A program made the position numbers and the translations under genes. Below the pieces are notes generated by a model. The model ran no database searches, was not told the origin of the DNA, and was given only the letters and a program-made list of their open reading frames with translations. From positions 62,001 through 126,000 of the IMG/VR virus record IMGVR_UViG_3300010158_000027: DNA of 64,000 bases. One strand, given 5' to 3'. Shown piece after piece: positions 2,957 through 20,717 of this stretch. Each line of letters opens with the position of its first letter. Position 1 is the stretch's first letter.

Positions 2957-5734
2957 ATGGCACAAGAGAAATTTACGGTTTGGCAAAGGTTAGGTAGAGT
3001 GTTTGGACCGAACGCAACTTTAGATCAACAATCACCCGTATTTAAATTTGATAAGAAAGAACTTTTAAAAACGACAGATAAGCAGGAATACGAGACTGAA
3101 AAACTGCAAGCTCAGCAAACCATGTATATCGGCAAGCAATGGCAAAAAGTCGAAAGCAATCTATACCAACAGGCGGTTTATTATGAACCAACACGGATGG
3201 CATCATATTATGATTACGAAAGTATGGAATATTGCATTGCAGGAGAAACTAAAATAGCGACTCCGAATGGTTTTATTACCATAAAAGAGTTGGCCGATAA
3301 GGGTAGGGATTATGAATTCATAACTTATGCTTATGATCATAATGAAAAAAAGGTGGTACCAGCAATGGCAAGAAATGCTCATTATACCCGTGATGAGATG
3401 ACATATAAAATTACTTTTGATGATGGGACTCACATTATTACGACTTGGGAACATCAATTAATGAAACGAGACGGTTCGTTTGAACGTGTTATGAATCTTA
3501 AATCAGGCGATTCTATGATGCCGTTTTATAGAAAATCATTTTATAATAATGAAAAATATAATTGGGTATACACATGTAATTCAAATGAAGGACATAATGG
3601 GTGGATTTCTGAACATAATATTATTGCTGAATGGTTTTATGATAAAAAAATAAATAAAGACGAAGAAGTTCATCACATAGATTTTAATGGTAAAAATAAT
3701 TTACCTGAAAATTTACAAATAATGAACATTTCTGAACATCGTTCTTACCACGCAAAACTCAATAATGAGAAATTGTGGTCAAACCCTGAATTTAGAGCAA
3801 AAATGTCAGAAGTTGCAAAAAGAAAAGGTAAGATGTCTTGGGGTGGTAAAAGGAGTGGCATTAATAATCCCGCTTATATTAAATTACCATTTGATAATAT
3901 TATTGAAAACGCTAGAAAATTTAAAGCATTAAAGAAAACTGCGGATTCATTAAATGTTTCTTACCGTAAATTACAACGAGAAATTATTAATTCAGGGTAT
4001 AAAGATTGGTCAACATTTTTGGATGCTTATGGGATTAAAAAATCACCCTATTCAACGGCAACAGCTAAAGGGGATAAAATAGTTGTTAACCATAAAATAG
4101 TTTCAATAGAACCTCATGGTGTGATACCTGTTTATGATTTAACAGTCCCTGGTTATAAAAACTTTGCAACAGATACCATATTCTCACATAATACTCCTGA
4201 AATTTCGGCAGCATTAGATATATATGCTGAAGAATCCACAACTCCCGACCAAGACGGACACATCATTAAAATTTATTCAGAATCAAAAAGAATAAAACAA
4301 GTCTTAACGGATTTATTTGTTTCCAAACTTGATATAAATACGAACTTACCCATGTGGACAAGAAACACATGTAAATTTGGTGATAATTTTATTTATTTAA
4401 AGTTAGACACTGAAAAAGGTGTGGTTGGTTGTCAACAATTACCAAATATCCAAATAGAGAGACTAGAGAGGGGTATGAGATTCCAACCCGATAAGTATTC
4501 TCAGGAAATGGAGAACGACGCATTAAAATTCGTTTGGAAAGAGAAGAACATGGAATTCAATACTTGGGAGGTTGGACACTTTAGATTATTGGGTGACGAT
4601 AGAAAATTACCATATGGTACATCTATGTTAGAAAAGGCAAGACGTATTTGGAAACAATTATTACTTTGTGAAGATGCGATGTTAATATATAGAGTTTCTA
4701 GAGCTCCCGAAAGACGGGTGTTTAAAGTATTCGTGGGTAACATGGACGATAAAGATGTTGATGCTTACGTACAAAGAGTTGCAAATAAATTTAAAAGAGA
4801 TCAGGTTGTTGATAATAAAACGGGTAATGTCGATATGAGATATAATCAATTGGCGGTTGATCAAGATTTCTTTATCCCTGTTCGTGATCCAGCAGCAACA
4901 AACCCTATCGAGACATTACCTGGAGCACAAAACTTAGCTGAAATTGCGGATATTGAATACATACAGAAAAAACTTGTAACCGCTCTAAGAATACCTAAAG
5001 CTTATTTAGGGTTTGAAGAGGCTATCGGAGGTGGTAATAATTTATCATTACTTGATATCCGTTTTGCTAGAACAATCAATAAAATTCAAAAATCAATGTT
5101 AGCTGAATTAAATAAAATAGCAATCATTCATTTATTTTTATTGGGGTTTGAGGATGAATTAACGAATTTTAGTTTAGGACTTAACAATCCATCTAAACAA
5201 GGTGAACTATTATCACTTGAGGTATGGAAAGAAAAGATATTACTTTACAAGGATGCGGTTGCTGAGATACCTAATTCAGTTGGCGCCGTATCAGCATCTT
5301 GGGGTAAGAAACATATTTTAGGTTTCTCTGATGAGGAGATTAAACTTGATATACAACAACAACGAATTGAAAGGGCGGTATCTGCAGAATTAACTAAAAC
5401 TGCTGAGGTAATAACTAAAACGGGGTTATTCGATAATATAGATAAACTTTATGGTACTAAGGTTGCTGCACCAGCACCCGAAGGTGCACCATCAGAAGAT
5501 GGGGGGGAACCATCCGAAATGGGAGGATTAACACCACCACCATCATCTGGACCTGAAGAACCGGCCCCACCACCTGAAATGGGGGGATTGACACCTGAAA
5601 GATTAGTGAGAAATGATTTAAATATGCTCTTAGAGGAAACATTAATAAACGGATCAGACTACATGGATTTATCTAAAGGTAGAGTTTCTTTAGGGTTAAT
5701 CGATGAAAAATTGAGACAAATGCTAGATAAGTAA
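2957..5734 (+). CDS. gp20: portal protein, T4 gp20-like, containing an intein
   Basis: PEISAALDIYAEE, PYGTSMLEKARRIWKQL, YRVSRAPERRVF, DFFIPVR and ALRIPKAYL are gp20-family motifs; follows terminase. Confidence 0.95.
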   Translation: MAQEKFTVWQRLGRVFGPNATLDQQSPVFKFDKKELLKTTDKQEYETEKLQAQQTMYIGKQWQKVESNLYQQAVYYEPTRMASYYDYESMEYCIAGETKIATPNGFITIKELADKGRDYEFITYAYDHNEKKVVPAMARNAHYTRDEMTYKITFDDGTHIITTWEHQLMKRDGSFERVMNLKSGDSMMPFYRKSFYNNEKYNWVYTCNSNEGHNGWISEHNIIAEWFYDKKINKDEEVHHIDFNGKNNLPENLQIMNISEHRSYHAKLNNEKLWSNPEFRAKMSEVAKRKGKMSWGGKRSGINNPAYIKLPFDNIIENARKFKALKKTADSLNVSYRKLQREIINSGYKDWSTFLDAYGIKKSPYSTATAKGDKIVVNHKIVSIEPHGVIPVYDLTVPGYKNFATDTIFSHNTPEISAALDIYAEESTTPDQDGHIIKIYSESKRIKQVLTDLFVSKLDINTNLPMWTRNTCKFGDNFIYLKLDTEKGVVGCQQLPNIQIERLERGMRFQPDKYSQEMENDALKFVWKEKNMEFNTWEVGHFRLLGDDRKLPYGTSMLEKARRIWKQLLLCEDAMLIYRVSRAPERRVFKVFVGNMDDKDVDAYVQRVANKFKRDQVVDNKTGNVDMRYNQLAVDQDFFIPVRDPAATNPIETLPGAQNLAEIADIEYIQKKLVTALRIPKAYLGFEEAIGGGNNLSLLDIRFARTINKIQKSMLAELNKIAIIHLFLLGFEDELTNFSLGLNNPSKQGELLSLEVWKEKILLYKDAVAEIPNSVGAVSASWGKKHILGFSDEEIKLDIQQQRIERAVSAELTKTAEVITKTGLFDNIDKLYGTKVAAPAPEGAPSEDGGEPSEMGGLTPPPSSGPEEPAPPPEMGGLTPERLVRNDLNMLLEETLINGSDYMDLSKGRVSLGLIDEKLRQMLDK
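3233..4192 (+). mobile_element. intein (320 aa) with HNH homing endonuclease, inserted in portal
   Basis: Starts CIAGETKIATPNG (block A), ends VYDLTVPGYKNFATDTIFSHN (blocks F/G) followed by Thr+1; internal EVHHIDFNGKNNLPENL HNH motif; excision restores SMEY-TPEISAALD. Confidence 0.93.
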
Positions 5735-12035: not shown

Positions 12036-12117
12036 GGTTAAAGAAAAATGGTGAGTGGGTTAAAAATAAATGGGTTATAAATTGACTTTTTATATATTTT
12101 TATTATATTTATATAAA

Positions 12118-13845
12118 ATGTTCGTAATGAAAACTAAATTAACTCCCGATAATATATTAACAATTATTGAATTATATCAGACTGAAATACCAAGTACTCA
12201 TAAATTAGCGGAAAAGTTTAAAGTTGGACATAAAAAAATTAATCAATTATTAAAAGAGAATAATATTCAGATTAATAAAAAAGGGGGGCAAACTCAAATG
12301 GGTAATAGTCTCGAGATAGAATCGACTAAGAGTAAAATGTATTCTACTTCAGAAACAAAAGAATTAGTCGCTCAATGTGTCAAAACAAATATCATTATAA
12401 AAGACCCAAATAATCTATCGGGTAAATTAACAAAACATATTATTGAATTATATGGAGATGTTTGGCTACCAGCAAACACCTACCAAAGAAAAAAATATGA
12501 ACACATTAATGGTAAAAAATGGTTTGAAGATTATTTTAAGATAATAGAGGTTAATAAATCAATAAATAGAACTTGTAAGTTGTGTGAATGGACAACTACT
12601 GATACATCCAATAAAACAGGTGGTTTTGAGAATCATTTAGTTAATAGTCATAATTTACCATTAAATGATTATTTATCTAAATTCCCCGAAGATATTATAT
12701 ATCACCCAACCCATTCTAAAAAATTAGAGTTAACAAAATTTTTATCAATTAATTCAAATTTTGTTACTTGTAATTTATGTGGTGAAAAAATGAAAAGTAT
12801 TTCTAACACACATTTAAAGAGTAAACATAATATTACAACATTAGAATATAAACTAAAATACCCAAACAATAAAATTGTATCAACCTCTGTTTCAAAAAAA
12901 CTAAGCGACTTAGTTAAAATTACTAATATTAATATGACACCTACATGGACATCAAAGGGTGAAACTGAGATTAAAGAGTTTATTGAGAGTCTTGGGTTCG
13001 TAACAAATAAAGGTAAAAACCGAAAAATATTAGACGGTAAAGAGATTGATTTAATAATTGAAGGGACTAATATATGTATTGAATATAATGGATTGTATTA
13101 TCATACGGAAAGTATGGGTAAAAATAGTTCCTATCATTTAAATAAAACAATTGATTGTAATCAGATTGGTTATAAACTATTTCACATTTTTGAAGATGAA
13201 TGGAAAACAAACGAAGAGTTGGTTAAAAGGAAATTGAAGCATTTATTAAACGTTAATGATGGGATTAGAATTGGTGGGAGAAACGTTAAAATACAAAGTA
13301 TTACTTCCGAAGATAAATCATTTTTTCTAAAAAATAATCACATTCAAGGATCGGACAAATCTAACATATCATACGGAGCGTACTATAATGATGAATTAGT
13401 TGGTGTTATGACATTTAATAATAAGAGAAACATGACTAAAACCGCCAATGGGGAATTTGAGTTAAGTAGATTCGCTACTAAACAGAATTATGTTATTAGT
13501 GGTTTGGCATCAAAAATATTAAAACGTTTCGTTAAAGACCATTCACCAACGAGTATTGTTAGTTTTGCAGATAGAAGATGGACAATAGATGGTGATAATA
13601 ACTTATACACTAATTTAGGGTTTACTTTAGTGTCCATTACAAAACCAACGTACTATTATTATAATTCTAAGGTTAGTCGGTATAAAAGATTTCACAAATT
13701 TGGTTTCGGTAAAAATAATCTTAAAAAAAGATTTCCAGAATTAGATTATACTAAGACAGAAAAAGTATTAACTACCGAGTTGGGATATGACAGAATATGG
13801 GATTGTGGACTATTTAAGTATCAATTATTCATAAATAATAACTAG
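12118..13845 (+). CDS. putative free-standing homing endonuclease (Hef-like; HTH, zinc fingers, PD-(D/E)xK-type nuclease, GNAT-like tail)
   Basis: EIDLII...ICIEYNGLYYH nuclease motif; Cys/His fingers CKLCEW...HLVNSH and CNLCGE...HLKSKH; ELSRFA...SFADRRW...RIWDCG tail; start placed at ATG 12118. Confidence 0.7.
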   Translation: MFVMKTKLTPDNILTIIELYQTEIPSTHKLAEKFKVGHKKINQLLKENNIQINKKGGQTQMGNSLEIESTKSKMYSTSETKELVAQCVKTNIIIKDPNNLSGKLTKHIIELYGDVWLPANTYQRKKYEHINGKKWFEDYFKIIEVNKSINRTCKLCEWTTTDTSNKTGGFENHLVNSHNLPLNDYLSKFPEDIIYHPTHSKKLELTKFLSINSNFVTCNLCGEKMKSISNTHLKSKHNITTLEYKLKYPNNKIVSTSVSKKLSDLVKITNINMTPTWTSKGETEIKEFIESLGFVTNKGKNRKILDGKEIDLIIEGTNICIEYNGLYYHTESMGKNSSYHLNKTIDCNQIGYKLFHIFEDEWKTNEELVKRKLKHLLNVNDGIRIGGRNVKIQSITSEDKSFFLKNNHIQGSDKSNISYGAYYNDELVGVMTFNNKRNMTKTANGEFELSRFATKQNYVISGLASKILKRFVKDHSPTSIVSFADRRWTIDGDNNLYTNLGFTLVSITKPTYYYYNSKVSRYKRFHKFGFGKNNLKKRFPELDYTKTEKVLTTELGYDRIWDCGLFKYQLFINNN

Positions 13846-13925
13846 AAAGGGGTATTTATACATTCATATAGTTTTTTCATTATATTATTGTTTTAATGCT
13901 GTATATTTATAGTAAAATACATGTC

Positions 13926-16900
13926 ATGAAAAAAATACTATTTATTATCACTTTTTTATGGGCATTTGGTTTGTCCCATTCACAAGTCTCAACCAACTAC
14001 ACGTTTTCAGAAACCACTGGAACGTATGTCGCAGTAACATTGGGTACTCAGTTAGTAACAACAACTGCTGGAGCAACCTCATATGATACCGACGGTAGTT
14101 ATATCACATTATCATCAGGAAATCAATTCACATTTAATGGAACTACGATCACATCTGTTAATATGACGGCTGATGGAGCTCTTTGGTTAAATCCTGGAAC
14201 TTCAACAACAGGAAATGCTGTTACTGGTTCCATAACTTCAACAGCGACAGCTACTGGTGTTATATGTCCATTGAATATGGATTTAAGAAGTACTTCAGTT
14301 GCTTCAACCGTATATGAAAGAAGATGGTATGATGATGGAACTGAAGATATTTTTCAATGGCAAAATTGTGCTAGATATTTGCAAACTACTGAGAAAATTT
14401 CATTCCAAATTCGTATTAATAAATCTACCGGTGTAATACGTGTGGTATATGGTGCTATGACTGTAACTACATCTGTTACGTATCAACCATATGTTGGTTT
14501 AAGGGGGAGCGCAAATACTGACTTTAATAATAGACAATTAAGTGCAACAGTACCAGATGCCAGCCCAAACTGGGGGGCACCTAGTGGTACGGGTGCCGGA
14601 GCATCAAACGCTAACACATGTAGATTCCTTAGTACAGCATCATGTTTCCCATCGTCTGGGTTAATATTCATATGGACACCAAAACCGGTTATAACACCAT
14701 CGGTTTCTACATTATCGGCGTTTTCATCATGTTCAGGTAGCGTGTCTAGTACCCAAAACTTCACAGTAACGGGGTCTAATATGTTAGCTGGTATAACAAT
14801 AACACCCCCAGTTGGGTTCGAAGTATCGACAAGTTCCACATTTGCAAGTAGTGTTGGTACAAGTTCATCATCGTTAGTGGTAGGTGCTTCTGGTACAATT
14901 GCGTCAACAACAATATATGTTAGATTACAATCTACAGCATCAACAGGAACACCATCAGGAAACATAACATTAGCTAGTACTAGTGCAACAACCATGAATG
15001 TCGCAGTATCAGGAAATGTAGGTGTTAATCTATCTGCTGTGGTTGTGTCATCAAGTACTACCCAATCAATATGTTTAGGTAGTAATGGAACATCTGTATC
15101 TGTCGCTGAAACGGGTGGTGGAACAATCACCGCAAGACAATGGGGTAGACGATCAATTTCGGGTGGAGCAATAACTAATGTCACAGGAACCTCATCTTCA
15201 TATACACCATTAGGTACGGATTTCACAACGGTTGGTACGTATTATTTAGTATGTACATCAACACCTACTTGTGGGTCAGCTACGGTTTCAAATGAAGTTA
15301 CAATCACAATAGTTGGTTCTCCATCAGCCCCCGGCATACCAACAACCAATTCACCACAATGTGTATCTCCTGGTGTAACGTTAACGGCAAATGGTTCGGC
15401 ACCGGCTGGAGAAACTTGGTATTGGCAAACAACAAGTACTGGAGTTGCAACCACAAGTTTTGCAAGTACATATGTTGTTACAACATCAGGAACTTATTAT
15501 ATAAGATCTCAATACACATCAGGTGGTTGCTGGGGAAGTGCGTCGTCAGCAGCAATTGTTATTAGTACTGTACCATCGGCTCCTTCATTAACATCACCAA
15601 CTACAGCGGCTACTGGGGTAAGTTTAACACCAACATTAACTTGGGGTGCAGTTGCTGGAGCTACAAGTTATGATGTGTATATCGGAACAACCTTACCTGG
15701 AAGTCCGACAGCAAACGTATTAACCAATTCATATACACCATCTACATTGGCGGCATCAACAGGACATTCATGGAAAGTGATCGCTAAAAATGCGTGTGGT
15801 TCAAGTGTTGCGTCGTCCACATATACATTTACAACAACATGTGCGTCAGTTGCGTTAACATATACACAATTATTTAATGCCGCTACTACACCTTCATGTT
15901 GGTCAACATCTATTGCTGCTGTTCAAACCGGAACTAAGATATCGTATGTTACATCTTCAACATATCTGACAGCGTCACCTCAAGAAGGGACATATTTTGT
16001 AAAATATTATTCATATAGTAATTCAAATGGTGGATCTGGATCGGAAGAAAGATTAATTACACCATCAATTGTTACTACAAGTACATCAAGTGTTGATGTT
16101 GAATTTTATTGGTTTCAAGATAACAGTGCGTCATATAATAGTGGGTCTTATTTAAATGAAGGTGTAACGGTTGAATGGTCAACTAACGGAACAACTTGGA
16201 CGACATCAACATTTTATCCGAGACACGTAAGTTCGGCTTCGGCTACGGGTGAATGGTCCAAAAAAACAATAACATTACCTTCGGGAGCTGGAAATATCGC
16301 AACTTTATATGTGGCGTTTAAATTCCATTCTGAATATGGTTATAATATGTATATAGATAATGTTGTGATTAAACCAACACCAAGTTGTGCTGAGCCCACT
16401 TCATTAACTTCTTCATCTATTACTTCTACAACATCAACAATTTCATGGACAGCATCATCGTCATCACCATCGGGTGGGTATGACTATTATTTATCTACTT
16501 CATCAACCGCACCAACTGGTAGTTCAACACCAACAGGATCCGTCGGTTCGGGTGTGGTAACAACTAATTTAAGTAGTTTAACTAACTCAACATTATATTA
16601 TTATTGGGTTCGTTCAAATTGTGGTAGTTCAACTTATTCAACATGGGCCGGATCATCATTTACTACTCTAATACCAAATGACAATAGTGGTGGTGCTATC
16701 GACTTAACAATAAATCCAAGCACTACCTGTACAACCACAACTACAGGCACTAGTATTGGCGCAACTCAAACATTGGCGGCACAATCATTATATGGTACAG
16801 CTGATGATGATGTATGGTATAAATTTACAGCAACAGCCGTTAATTTAACTATGACAGTTGCTCGAGGTACTATGGGTGATTTGGTTGTTGAGGGATATAA

Positions 16901-17888
16901 TAGCTCATTAGTGTCTATGGGTGTCGTTGATGCTACTACTGGAACTGAAACTATAAATTGGACGGTAACTGTTGGGAATGTATATTATATTAGAGTTTAT
17001 AGTTATAGTTCATTAAGTAGTACTCGAGGAACATTTACTATCTGTATAACAACACCAACTCAGCCCCCAGTAAATGATAACGCATCCGGAGCTATAACGT
17101 TAATCGTTAATAACCCATACATAACAGGAACTAATGACGGGGCAACCTCATCGTCAACCGCACCAACACCAACAGGTCCATCTTATTATGGTGGAGATGT
17201 TTGGTATAAAGTGGTTGTACCCTCTGGTGGAACTTTTCAAATCAGAACATCGGCATTGGTATTAACAGATATCGTTATAGAGATATATTCGGGTACATCT
17301 TCAGCATTAACATATATAACATACAATGATGATAGTTCATCAGTAAATTCAATGTCATATTTAGAGGTAACCGGTAGAACTGTAGGTGAAACAATATGGA
17401 TTAGAGTTTGGGACTATAGTGGGGACAATACTGGAACATTCCAAATTAGAGTATCAACACCAGTCTCGTTACCTATTAGTTTAATATCATTTACGGGTCA
17501 CAATACGGTTGATGGTAATTCGTTGGAATGGAAAACAGCGTCTGAAGTTAACAGTGATTATTTCACATTGTCAAGGGGACTATATAGAGATGGTTCTGTC
17601 GAATGGTTAGAGTTACAATTTGTTAATGGTGCTGGTAATTCAAATATTATTAACACATACGGGTATTTCGATTTAGACTACCCAAACGATATAAATTATT
17701 ACCAATTAACTCAAACAGATTATGACGGTAATTCGGTAACATATGATATGATTTCTATCGATAATAGAATAAATAGTAAAATAATATCATCTATGGTAAA
17801 TTTACTTGGACAAGAGGTAAATGAAAACTATAGGGGAATTGTGGTTGTAACATACACAGATGGTTCTGTGGAAAAAATAATGAAATGA
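13926..17888 (+). CDS. secreted Ser/Thr-rich multidomain adhesin-like protein (Ig/FN3/PPC-like) with a Bacteroidota T9SS-like C-terminus
   Basis: Signal peptide [19 protein letters not shown]; FN3-like CAEPTSL...ISWT...YDYY; two ND...DVWYK modules; [10 protein letters not shown]...[14 protein letters not shown]...[11 protein letters not shown]; tail NLLGQEV...YTDGSVEK. Confidence 0.8.
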
Positions 17889-19171
17889 AAAAATTAATAA
17901 TAGTATTATCCTTTATTTTAAATTCAATATTAACCCTTGCTCAACCATCAAACGATGATTGTAGTGGAGCTCAGAATCTAGGAACATTACCAACACCCTC
18001 GGCATGTCCAAGTGGTGTTGGTTCTTTTGTTAATGTGGTGGGTACCACAATAAACGCAACCTCACCATCTCCTTATACCTATTTATTGGGTTGTCAAACG
18101 GGTGGTAATCAACCTGCACCTGCATTAGATGTATGGTATAAATTCGTCGCTTCAGGTACTCAAGTTAATATAAATATAACACCAGGATCAGCTCCCGTTT
18201 TACAAAGTCCATCAATAACATTATGGATCGGAACAAATTGTTCAACTCTTTCAGGGGTTAACTGTGATAATAATGGAACGGTTGCTGGTAATAATAGTGT
18301 AACTTTCCAACCATTAATTCCTGGAACAACATACTACATACAAGTTAGTGGAATGACTTCAGGTGGGTCAGGTAATTTTAACATGTCCGTTAATAGTACA
18401 AACGATTGTAATAATTGTTTACAAACGTCAAGTCTTACATCAATACCATCACCCACAAATGGAGCGTTTTTACCAAATCAGTCCGTATCTTTTTCTTATA
18501 CAATAACTACATACACACAAGTATCCGCCAATTGGTTACATGGAGTTATTCCAACATTTGGTAATGGGTGGGATTTATCAACACTAGTGAATGTTGCTGC
18601 TATCTCATGTTCGGGTAGTGGTACGTGGATTTGGTATAATAGTAATACTAGTACCGCAACTGGTACTACCACAGGACCTGGGTTTTACTATAATTATCCT
18701 GGTGGAACTGCCGGTAATAACTACGGTGATAATAACTCTTCTGGAGCATGTACTTGGACATTTTTCTGGGCAATTAAAACAAAACCAAACTGCACGTCGG
18801 GAACTAACTTAAACATTTCCATTAATACAACCGCTGATGGTGAGACTGGGTCTTGGACAAGCGTTGCTTGTTTGGGGGATCCTAATTATAGTTTTGGTGC
18901 TGTTTTAAATTGTTGTACCACTACAGCAACTTTCACAAACCCCACTTGTAATAATGGTACTAATGGAACGGCAACTGCTGTACCGAACGGAATCGCACCT
19001 TATACATATTCATGGAATACATCACCAATTCAAACAACACAAACAGCAACAAATCTACCATCAGGTACGTACACAGTTACAGTAACAGACGCATCTGGAT
19101 GTGTATCAACAGCGACAGTAACGATCATAAATCCAAGTCCAATAGTTGTTGGCAACATAATACATAATTAA
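17885..19171 (+). CDS. secreted protein with a C-terminal SprB repeat
   Basis: Signal peptide; ND.C...DVWYKF module; [13 protein letters not shown]...APYTYSW...[19 protein letters not shown] is an SprB-type repeat. Confidence 0.8.
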
Positions 19172-19183
19172 AAATAAAAAGTC

Positions 19184-19747
19184 ATGAAAAAATTATTAAT
19201 CTTAGCTCTATCATTAATATCCTTAGTCGGATATTCTCAATCAACAGTAAATCCTGACACAGTTTGTTATCAAACAAATGGATCAACATACACGGTACCA
19301 TCTTTAGGTGCTGGGTATACGTATACATGGACAATCGCTTCACCTGGTGTGATAACTGCAGGACAAACAACGAATTCAATAGTTGTGGATTGGTCGACAG
19401 CATCTCCTGGTTTAATAAACAGTGGTGTAAGTGTTGTTGCTTCAAGTGCTAGTGGATGTTTAAGTACTCCCGTAACATTAAATGTTTTAATATACCAAGT
19501 ACTTCCAACGATTACCCCTATCGGGCCTTTCTGTACTGGCGCTGCTTGTGTTACTTTAGTTGGAACACCAATTGGTGGTGTATTTACAGGTACTGGGGTT
19601 GTCGGTAATCAATTTTGTCCTGTCACATCAGGTGTAGGAACATTTACATTAACTTATACTGTTACATCGTCTGGTTGTACGTTCACAACAACTACATCAG
19701 TTACGGTAACACCAATTCTAACACTATCTCCGATACAACATAATTAA
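19184..19747 (+). CDS. secreted PKD/Ig-like protein
   Basis: Signal peptide; YTYTWT...GQTTNSIVVDW and GGVFTGTGV...FCP...GVGTFTLTYT are typical of Bacteroidota Ig-like repeats. Confidence 0.75.
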   Translation: MKKLLILALSLISLVGYSQSTVNPDTVCYQTNGSTYTVPSLGAGYTYTWTIASPGVITAGQTTNSIVVDWSTASPGLINSGVSVVASSASGCLSTPVTLNVLIYQVLPTITPIGPFCTGAACVTLVGTPIGGVFTGTGVVGNQFCPVTSGVGTFTLTYTVTSSGCTFTTTTSVTVTPILTLSPIQHN

Positions 19748-19748
19748 A

Positions 19749-20321
19749 ATGAAATTAATTTTAACAATATTATTTTTAACAGGTTTCTTCACATATTCTC
19801 AACAAGTCATTGAGATATGTGAGGGAGAATCTGTGTCTTATACATATTCGATTAATTCACAAATACCTATGAATTTTGATTGGGTAGTTAATGGCGATCA
19901 CTATTTGGTGGATGAGTTAACTATGGATTGGTCGGTTGCTGGGACATATGATATATCAGTAACAGGTTATTCCGTTAACGGAGATTGTCCATCTGATACC
20001 CAAAACTATAATGTTGTTGTTATTTTTTGTGAAGAAATGGTGTATTGGGTTCCTAATACATTTACACCAGACGATGATGAACATAATCAATATTTCTATC
20101 CTGTAATAACGGATGGTATTGATATTAATGATTTTACCTTTTTGATTTTTAATAGGTGGGGTGAGGTTATATGGGAATCTCATGATACCTCAGCTAAATG
20201 GGATGGGTATTATAAGGGAAAAAAATGTCAAGATGGGGTTTATATATGGAAGATGGTGTTTGGTATTAGTAGTAGTGATAAGAGAATCGATACACACGGA
20301 CATTTAAATATATTAAGATAA
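19749..20321 (+). CDS. secreted protein with gliding-motility-associated (T9SS type B, CHU_C-like) C-terminal domain
   Basis: Signal peptide; WVPNTFTPDDDEHNQYF...IFNRWGEVIWES...WDGYY...QDGVYIW. Confidence 0.88.
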   Translation: MKLILTILFLTGFFTYSQQVIEICEGESVSYTYSINSQIPMNFDWVVNGDHYLVDELTMDWSVAGTYDISVTGYSVNGDCPSDTQNYNVVVIFCEEMVYWVPNTFTPDDDEHNQYFYPVITDGIDINDFTFLIFNRWGEVIWESHDTSAKWDGYYKGKKCQDGVYIWKMVFGISSSDKRIDTHGHLNILR

Positions 20322-20330
20322 AATTAATGT

Positions 20331-20717
20331 GTGAGTTTTCCTAACCGACACATATTTATATGTATGGAAAAGAAAAATAAGGTTGGTGGCGGTGGAAATA
20401 GACTAGCATACGAAAATGGACTTCTTAAATATATTAAATCTATTAGATTAACAAATGATGAAGTTTTTGTTGAAAACTCAACATACGCAAGACACCACAT
20501 TAAAAGACGAATAATTGAAGAGAATCTAGTTGATTACAAGTGTGATGAATGTGGTAATGTGGGTAGTTGGAATAATAAACCACTACCGTTGATTTTAGAC
20601 CACATAAATGGTATAAATAACGATAATAGGTTGGAAAATCTAAGATTTGTTTGTAGTAACTGCGATTCTCAATTACCAACCTATAAAAATAGGAGAGGTA
20701 GTAAAGGAAAAAAGTGA
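20331..20717 (+). CDS. HNH endonuclease
   Basis: CDEC...LILDHINGINNDNRLENLRFVCSNCD; start may be ATG 20364. Confidence 0.9.
   Translation: MSFPNRHIFICMEKKNKVGGGGNRLAYENGLLKYIKSIRLTNDEVFVENSTYARHHIKRRIIEENLVDYKCDECGNVGSWNNKPLPLILDHINGINNDNRLENLRFVCSNCDSQLPTYKNRRGSKGKK

Follow-up and report, generated by a model that had tools for sequence, protein, structure and literature searches.

A short C-terminal tail, I-x-H-N, closes two adjacent genes for secreted proteins, T (428 amino acids, aa) and S (187 aa), in a 64,000-nt stretch of DNA (in the following, the window) that covers bases 62,001-126,000 of the 281,269-bp virus record IMGVR_UViG_3300010158_000027, a T4-like giant phage. They are followed by gene A (190 aa), the only one of the three that qualifies by its C-terminal domain (CTD) as type B cargo for type IX secretion systems (T9SS). 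T, S and A very probably constitute one functional unit, and non-covalent strand docking of the tails, for which the chances appear slightly better than even, would attach the CTD-less pieces to the CTD-bearing anchor in trans. T9SS cargo is understood as single polypeptides, each with its own C-terminal sorting domain. The module described here, which is widespread in phages and present in some bacteria, places the adhesive parts on separate CTD-less proteins, each labeled at its C-terminus by an invariant signature of four residues, which appears exclusive to the split form.

The paired C-terminal tails

Read directly from the sequence, T ends in IIHN and S in IQHN, the C-terminus of the latter being given as ...SVTVTPILTLSPIQHN or ...TPILTLSPIQHN, and both genes are closed by CATAATTAA (positions 19163-19171 in T and 19739-19747 in S). 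Only two of the 334 open reading frames (ORFs) of at least 80 aa in the whole phage genome end in HN, namely the neighbours T and S. As 0.05 ORFs with an [IL]-x-H-N ending would be expected from amino acid composition and two neighbouring genes would both acquire this ending with a probability of about 8e-6, a chance origin of the paired tails can be ruled out. Gene A scores 50 bits with CHU_C (PF13585) and 38.9 bits with Bac_Flav_CTERM (TIGR04131), which exceeds the curated cut-offs of 27 and 35, respectively; for T and S, neither Pfam nor NCBIfam returns a T9SS sorting domain, which places them outside type B CTD cargo. Hence, the initial annotation of this locus, which had described the common tail, the identical gene ending, two proteins devoid of a sorting domain and a type B CTD supplied by the next gene, is borne out by the sequence itself and by the Pfam and NCBIfam matches.

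Besides its signal peptide, T comprises a GBD-like domain, a domain of 150 aa also present in 197-aa T proteins of phages, one SprB-type repeat (below a listed PF13573 match) and the tail. Sec-type signal peptides followed by Gln are predicted, from the sequences and from the AlphaFold 2 (AF2) model of S, for T, S, A and a 1330-aa protein encoded directly upstream, with start sequences including MKKLLILALSLISLVGYSQ... and MKLILTILFLTGFFTYSQQ...; a canonical lipobox is absent from the signal peptides. The N-termini of T, S and A follow the typical MKK-hydrophobic-S/A-Q pattern, and the model of S displays a helix at residues 2-16 and low confidence at 16-21 in this region. In the 1330-aa protein, the signal peptide is preceded by a 9-residue leader (MLYIYSKIHV), which probably reflects an upstream ATG.

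Conservation of the tail across homologues

Altogether, 542 homologues of S were found, and endings were counted among the 120 listed. All 120, each of about 187 aa, end in P-I-x-H-[ND] placed exactly at the C-terminus (112 HN, 8 HD), with Q, S, E or N as variable residue and with P183, I184 and H186 being invariant. In the 80 viral loci retrieved with S, the upstream T genes encode 63 distinct proteins, all of which end in [IV]-x-H-N despite differing upstream domains; G423, I425, H427 and N428 are their only invariant residues past the signal peptide besides a few core positions. Among these 63, lengths of 197 aa (the commonest form), 322, 349, 425 and 428 aa occur, and forms of 258, 382-384, 455 and 742-771 aa were found elsewhere, the first-gene proteins covering at least seven domain architectures. 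The tail follows at least three unrelated last domains, i.e. the SprB repeat, the domain of the 197-aa T and the PKD-like domain of S. Its terminal residues remain unchanged, always exactly at the stop codon, among T proteins down to about 30% identity and among S proteins down to 55%, and the penultimate His is constant in 43 of 43 diverse tails. These data support the tail as a conserved element that is independent of the preceding domain. They also agree with the initial annotation, which had spoken of interchangeable subunits and would have abandoned the idea if homologues did not keep the tail. In a distant version of the module from another lineage, the first protein (L265:1342-3045) ends in I-Y-H-Y instead of H-N, the His thus being more constant than the last residue.

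Distribution and gene order of the module

The order T-S-A accounts for 62 of about 82 distinct modules, the remaining ones reading S-A, T-S-S-A, T-S-A-T or T-S-T or being cut by contig ends, and it recurs in about 80 distinct phage loci as well as in six Flavobacteriales metagenome-assembled genomes (MAGs) with module genes. The spacing from S to A usually falls between -10 and +10 nt, and a small type B CTD gene is present in the great majority of loci with a sufficiently long contig. One exception that is not cut by a contig end is locus L263, a short contig on which a 65-aa ORF (1801-1998), possibly the remains of a disrupted anchor gene or an artifact of assembly, takes the place of A. 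In the three MAGs whose contigs span the module, T measures 742-771 aa, includes CUB, PKD and P-domains, and is accompanied by a single S gene or two in tandem and by A; two of these three modules are located on contigs 974 kb and 348 kb in length, where they adjoin ordinary chromosomal genes. Extra tail-bearing genes were observed at L144:1451-3406, as a 455-aa ORF after A in L067 and L157, and as the two tandem S genes in MAGs. From the arrangements T-S-T, T-S-A-T and tandem S, it follows that the number of tail-bearing pieces per anchor varies.

A search for this ending and for its linkage to CHU_C genes, as proposed in the initial annotation, covered the phage genome itself, the phage loci and a host-like MAG, and led almost exclusively to genes of the module. 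ORFs ending in H[ND] make up 166 of the 1018 distinct ORFs of the phage loci, and 164 of them are module genes. The host-like 2.8-Mb MAG G001 contains about 43 CHU_C matches, yet genuine I-x-H-N ORFs are confined to its three module genes. On these grounds, the tail is judged from sequence to be specific to the module and no general secretion tag.

When a profile of 32-residue tails was searched against 1.84 billion representative proteins, the matches were mostly Ig (immunoglobulin-like) repeats of giant proteins; in addition, new tail bearers ending in A-I-W-H-N, I-I-W-H-N and P-I-W-H-N were retrieved. Two of these could be placed on contigs, each of which harbors a tandem pair (DIYHY then AIWHN; PIYHN then IIWHN). 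In L265 (48% G+C), the pair is located immediately upstream of two CTD-type proteins, the 612-aa protein of this locus being an extended S and the next one, of 498 aa, an extended A with the same N-domain. The contig of L266 stops about 700 bp past its pair, with no further gene called. Judged by the tandem pairs on both contigs and the extended S and A on L265, the arrangement of tandem tails with a CTD extends beyond the phage group.

Relation to single-chain relatives

Comparison of the pieces with each other revealed that T and S have only the last about 29 residues including the tail in common (hhalign probability 96%), and that the N-terminal PKD_6-like domain of S is homologous to that of A (hhalign probability 97.7%, a score inflated by the aligned signal peptides). 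Tails on T and S together with a common N-terminal domain on S and A are the pattern predicted by a head-to-tail chain running from T via S to A. The S profile was also searched in 301 genomes of the order to which the MAGs belong. A fused family was found that comprises at least 118 protein clusters of 650-825 aa, spans the whole S-A region and is named 'gliding motility-associated-like protein' by JGI. The 816-aa ORF of L272 opens with an N-domain, for which the T protein of G144 has a homologous counterpart, and with SprB repeats; then come an S unit (A1 hidden Markov model (HMM) 15-186, E = 1.9e-43) and, directly after it, an A unit with CTD (A2 HMM 16-188, E = 2.8e-59). L271 encodes a 328-aa T ending in GGSIEHN, a 112-aa ORF and a 491-aa protein with an S-like start and a type B CTD at its end. 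Since the gene order of the module equals the domain order in the fused proteins, the phage module is a known type of adhesin in split form.

In the fused relatives, no signal peptide is found between the parts. Their S-to-A junction, ...V-Y-P-R-P-x-I-x-P-[IV]-x-(N/D)-(G/N)-linker-[YF]-x-E-[IL]-C-E-G-D, keeps the prolines and the Ile/Val of the tail, while the columns of His-Asn are occupied by N/D and G/N or deleted. The first strand of the split A reads 'QQxIExC', and the cut falls in the short linker just ahead of it. A parallel situation is met at the T-to-S junction, ...D-P-P-x-V-T-I-N-P-I-T-G-S-D-T-V-C-Y, where Ile is kept (I476 in 55 of 56 sequences) and His-Asn is not. Judged by the composition of these junction columns, His-Asn with its free carboxylate appears in the cut form only. 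More remotely, the tail aligns with the linker and first-strand start ('P.P..ITP.GPFC') between Ig repeats of giant T9SS proteins, which accounts for its origin from an inter-repeat linker. Regarding the 'split SprB' suggested in the initial annotation, the notion of a split adhesin is upheld by fused homologues of the same order, whereas SprB itself is not the counterpart, the relatives being CTD proteins of 650-825 aa with SprB repeats.

Structure models

The AF2 model of S alone, with a predicted local distance difference test (pLDDT) score of 89.7, consists of two beta-sandwich domains; residues 177-187 form coil, the tail at 181-187 having a mean pLDDT of 83. For the fused 816-aa homologue, modeled from a 56-sequence alignment with a mean pLDDT of 84.3, residues 635-640 (equivalent to L-S-P-I-Q-H of the tail) are assigned as strand, 641-646 as turn and 647-652, the first strand of A, again as strand, with pLDDT values of 88-91 over the stretch 635-652. 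The simplest reading of this model is a hairpin in which the tail equivalent would pair with the first strand of A, its loop being the site of the cut and of the signal peptide. Prediction of the three-chain complex of T, S and A gave 0.33 compared to 0.41 for the control, which amounts to 'no answer' and is usable neither way. By sequence, nothing beyond a weak Ig-repeat match (7b5h) was found in the PDB; by fold, generic tandem Ig proteins match the S model. Its best bacterial fold matches (model m6c9f79bc0151, window 19184-19744) are Ig-repeat fragments of Aureispira GhpA (TMq 0.50-0.54).

Proposed mechanism and alternative explanations

According to the proposed mechanism, T, S and A would represent a single surface adhesin cut into three secreted polypeptides, with T serving as variable binding head, S as two-domain Ig spacer and A as small Ig domain with a type B CTD. 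Each piece would be taken to the periplasm by its own signal peptide. The tail of T and S (...P-I-x-H-N-COOH) would be the connector, i.e. the counterpart of the short beta-strand ahead of the next domain's first strand in the fused chain, and would dock non-covalently as an added strand alongside the N-terminal strand in the PKD_6-like domain of its successor, that of T on S and that of S on A. The terminal His-Asn and the free carboxylate would then adjoin the N-terminal Gln of the partner and stabilize the cut hairpin. Only A would be recognized by the host T9SS and retained on the cell surface through a protein of the PorP/SprF type, and the T:S:A complex would be exported and displayed via this single CTD. 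For the phage, the gain would presumably be a remodeled surface of the infected cell; the variable T head likewise suggests surface remodeling or adhesion of the infected cell. A wider version, advanced tentatively and with somewhat less than an even chance, regards I-x-H-N-COOH as a general trans-docking connector in Bacteroidota and phages, by which interchangeable CTD-less pieces could be exported on the single CTD of an anchor. In that case, 'hitchhiking' cargo would be on record for the T9SS for the first time, and giant freshwater phages might use the cassette to re-dress the surface of the infected cell, e.g. to block superinfection or to change adhesion.

Several points weigh against docking. 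The tail holds two or three prolines, which is atypical for an alternating donor strand, and DSSP lists the strands of the fused model without pairing partners, so that the hairpin is inferred; at the T-to-S junction of the same model, the assignment is limited to isolated bridge residues. The variable residue of the tail does not covary with the N-terminus of the partner, and the literature yielded no precedent for T9SS export of a CTD-less partner. Finally, PorP/SprF (PF11751) has no match anywhere in the 281-kb phage genome, for which reason anchoring has to rely on a host protein. Type B cargo requires a cognate or shared shuttle, and orphan cargo on a shared shuttle is known (PMC12618676); the missing PorP/SprF gene is therefore compatible with A being type B cargo.

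Covalent coupling, with the terminal Asn or Asp bonded to the next subunit or to a host surface molecule as in Gram-positive pilins, in Spy/Snoop or in a PorU sortase-like reaction, could build on a terminal residue capable of isopeptide bonds in either form, Asn or, for about 7% of the S proteins, Asp, and on the invariant adjacent His, which could serve catalysis. Furthermore, the last strand of the CTD of A has Lys in 4 of 7 HD loci compared to 0 of 72 HN loci, where His, Phe, Thr, Ser or Tyr is found instead. This link, however, probably goes back to one or two evolutionary events and Lys is missing in three HD loci, and T still ends in HN where S has HD. As mature S and A possess no invariant or near-invariant Lys, the Asn isopeptide linkage put forward in the initial annotation finds no partner residue, and its transpeptidation variant fails at the stop codon directly after Asn, a free C-terminus providing no leaving group. 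In addition, type B CTD cargo is reported to attach via PorP-like proteins without a need for PorU (PMC9143113). Covalent coupling is hence very improbable. In this context, an isopeptide link inside the module of the CnaB or Spy/Snoop type was rejected, Asn/Asp being present but a conserved Lys being absent, as was covariation between A and the N/D end of S, of which just a partial His-to-Lys association is left. The Lys in A (G-K for G-H) occurs in L141, L142, L261 and L264 and could be either the mark of a contact or a sign of common ancestry.

An independent sorting tag, with I-x-H-N-COOH being read by a host factor (e.g. a shuttle of the T9SS, a chaperone in the periplasm or a protein of the outer membrane) instead of the adjacent subunit, and with T and S exported or placed alone, would suit a motif that, in the manner of other sorting signals, sits at the very end of the protein whatever domain precedes it, and the phage, having no PorP/SprF gene, leans on host machinery anyway. 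A general signal should be more widely distributed than on the module genes of G001, for which reason a general T9SS tag was rejected. The tail genes, moreover, almost always adjoin an A gene, and the fused homologues place the tail position at an interdomain junction; a sorting role thus appears unlikely. If the tail acted as an intramolecular cap or metal site instead, His, Asn/Asp and the carboxylate, a plausible metal-binding triad, would fold back on the protein's own last Ig domain and leave three separate or loosely joined proteins, for which the fairly confident tail of the monomer model might speak. Against this stand the identical tail behind unrelated last domains, its change from coil in the monomer model to strand in the fused homologue, and the fused relatives, which share the last domain and lack His-Asn, so that we consider such a cap rather improbable. 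A functionless remnant, namely an inter-repeat linker left after truncation of longer genes, would account for the alignment with the linkers of giant multi-repeat T9SS proteins. Its probability is nonetheless close to nil given terminal residues that stay invariant exactly at the stop codon in both diverged families, the constant His, and a start codon and signal peptide for each piece in about 80 distinct loci; the conservation data thus exclude a truncation remnant. Two further readings were discarded. An intein-type His-Asn is incompatible with the missing Intein/Hint match in T and S and with a stop following Asn, where no Cys, Ser or Thr nucleophile is available, and joining by read-through or frameshift is contradicted by signal peptides on the downstream pieces that the fused proteins do not have, by the use of three frames and by gaps that vary between loci.

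If the docking plug held true, the T9SS could export pre-assembled hetero-oligomers, and the tail would be a minimal natural connector that might be reused for loading foreign proteins onto Bacteroidota surfaces. Giant phages would then hold a ready kit for changing the host surface, with the variable head being swapped between phages. The natural pairs of fused and split forms allow direct testing of the docking idea.

Gene cluster and flanking genes

The virus record has a CheckV completeness of 96% and a G+C content of 33%, and the window includes genes for a T4-type terminase, an intein-bearing portal protein and a Gp23-type capsid protein. Downstream of the capsid region, four secreted-protein genes (1330, 428, 187 and 190 aa) are followed by an HNH endonuclease gene (Table 1). 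S and A are without a family in PHROGs. Module membership of the 1330-aa protein is uncertain; it was found in the closest phages only, and neither Pfam nor NCBIfam detects a CTD in it. Its relatives in L052 and L078 (816-819 aa) have ends resembling type A CTDs, and hence T9SS cargo of both types, A and B, may be present in the phage group. The zf-BED/endonuclease-like and HNH genes at the flanks suggest that the secreted-protein cluster, located between the capsid genes and the following minus-strand block, is a cassette that is mobile or was inserted recently. The intein interrupting the portal gene is genuine; its end, ...SHN, precedes a Thr, and it bears no relation to the tails of T and S.

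Table 1 Features of the secreted-protein cluster and selected other genes of the window
Feature	Position	Strand	Remarks
Portal protein	2957-5734	+	Intein-interrupted; Portal_T4 aa 412-801, Intein_splicing aa 107-412
591-aa protein	12070-13845	+	zf-BED/ROS_MUCR; weak restriction-endonuclease-like matches
1330-aa secreted multi-domain protein	13896-17888	+	Stop overlaps start of T (ATGA)
Gene T, 428 aa	17885-19171	+	Variable putative 'tip' piece, secreted, CTD-less
Tail of T	19136-19168	+	11 residues; stop codon 19169-19171
Gene S, 187 aa	19184-19747	+	Signal peptide, PKD_6 (aa 23-99), second Ig-like domain, tail
Tail of S, PILTLSPIQHN	19712-19744	+	Stop codon 19745-19747, one base ahead of the ATG of A
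Gene A, 190 aa, putative 'anchor'	19749-20321	+	Signal peptide, PKD_6-like N-domain (aa 19-95), type B T9SS CTD (aa 101-188)
HNH endonuclease	20331-20717	+	

Comparison with known systems

No paper was found in the literature on CTD-less T9SS passengers, on a T9SS-exported multi-subunit adhesin or on a tail of this kind, in line with the initial annotation, which knew of no described counterpart. The domains, the CTD and the unsplit family are known already, and the split architecture, the connector and the prevalence in giant phages appear to be new.

The type B CTD of gene A is common to cargo of the SprB/SprF type such as that of F. johnsoniae and PG1035/PorP of P. gingivalis, which is anchored by binding to a PorP/SprF-like outer-membrane protein (PMC9143113). 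In contrast to such cargo, A is an orphan of merely 190 aa and the adhesive parts reside on separate CTD-less polypeptides. SprB proper, of about 6500 aa and encoded together with sprF, is likewise unlike the module, in which T has one SprB-type repeat and sprF is missing. Type V (FimA/Mfa1) and chaperone-usher pili resemble the module in the layout of their operons, which combine a variable tip with a constant shaft and an anchor, and in having Ig-like subunits; their terminal strand completes the sheet of the next subunit, and a strand that completes or extends it is proposed for the module, too. However, the module proteins are not lipoprotein precursors, their tail is short and proline-rich with a His-Asn end, and export is proposed to proceed through the T9SS; no chaperone, usher or protease-processed N-terminal strand was found within the module or beside it, either in the window or in the about 80 loci. 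The single-chain relatives, furthermore, suggest a 1:1:1 stoichiometry rather than a polymer.

Co-export of a partner has a parallel in the Tat 'hitchhiker' mechanism (PaoABC, small and large hydrogenase subunits), in which a signal-less subunit crosses the membrane bound to a signal-bearing one (PMC4273604). The module differs from it in concerning the outer membrane and the T9SS, with a folded C-terminal domain as signal, and co-export would here be a prediction. The Aureispira grappling hook protein GhpA, a surface filament of a Bacteroidota bacterium, has tandem Ig-like repeats as in S, a likeness at the level of the repeat fold only, and is a single giant chain as opposed to the split module. 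The fused Flavobacteriales CTD proteins (PKD_6, SprB repeats and CHU_C, 650-825 aa), finally, share homologous domains in the same order with the module and conserve the Ile and the flanking prolines of the tail at their junctions; they differ in being one polypeptide with one signal peptide, and in carrying N/D-G/N or a deletion where the module has His-Asn and a stop.

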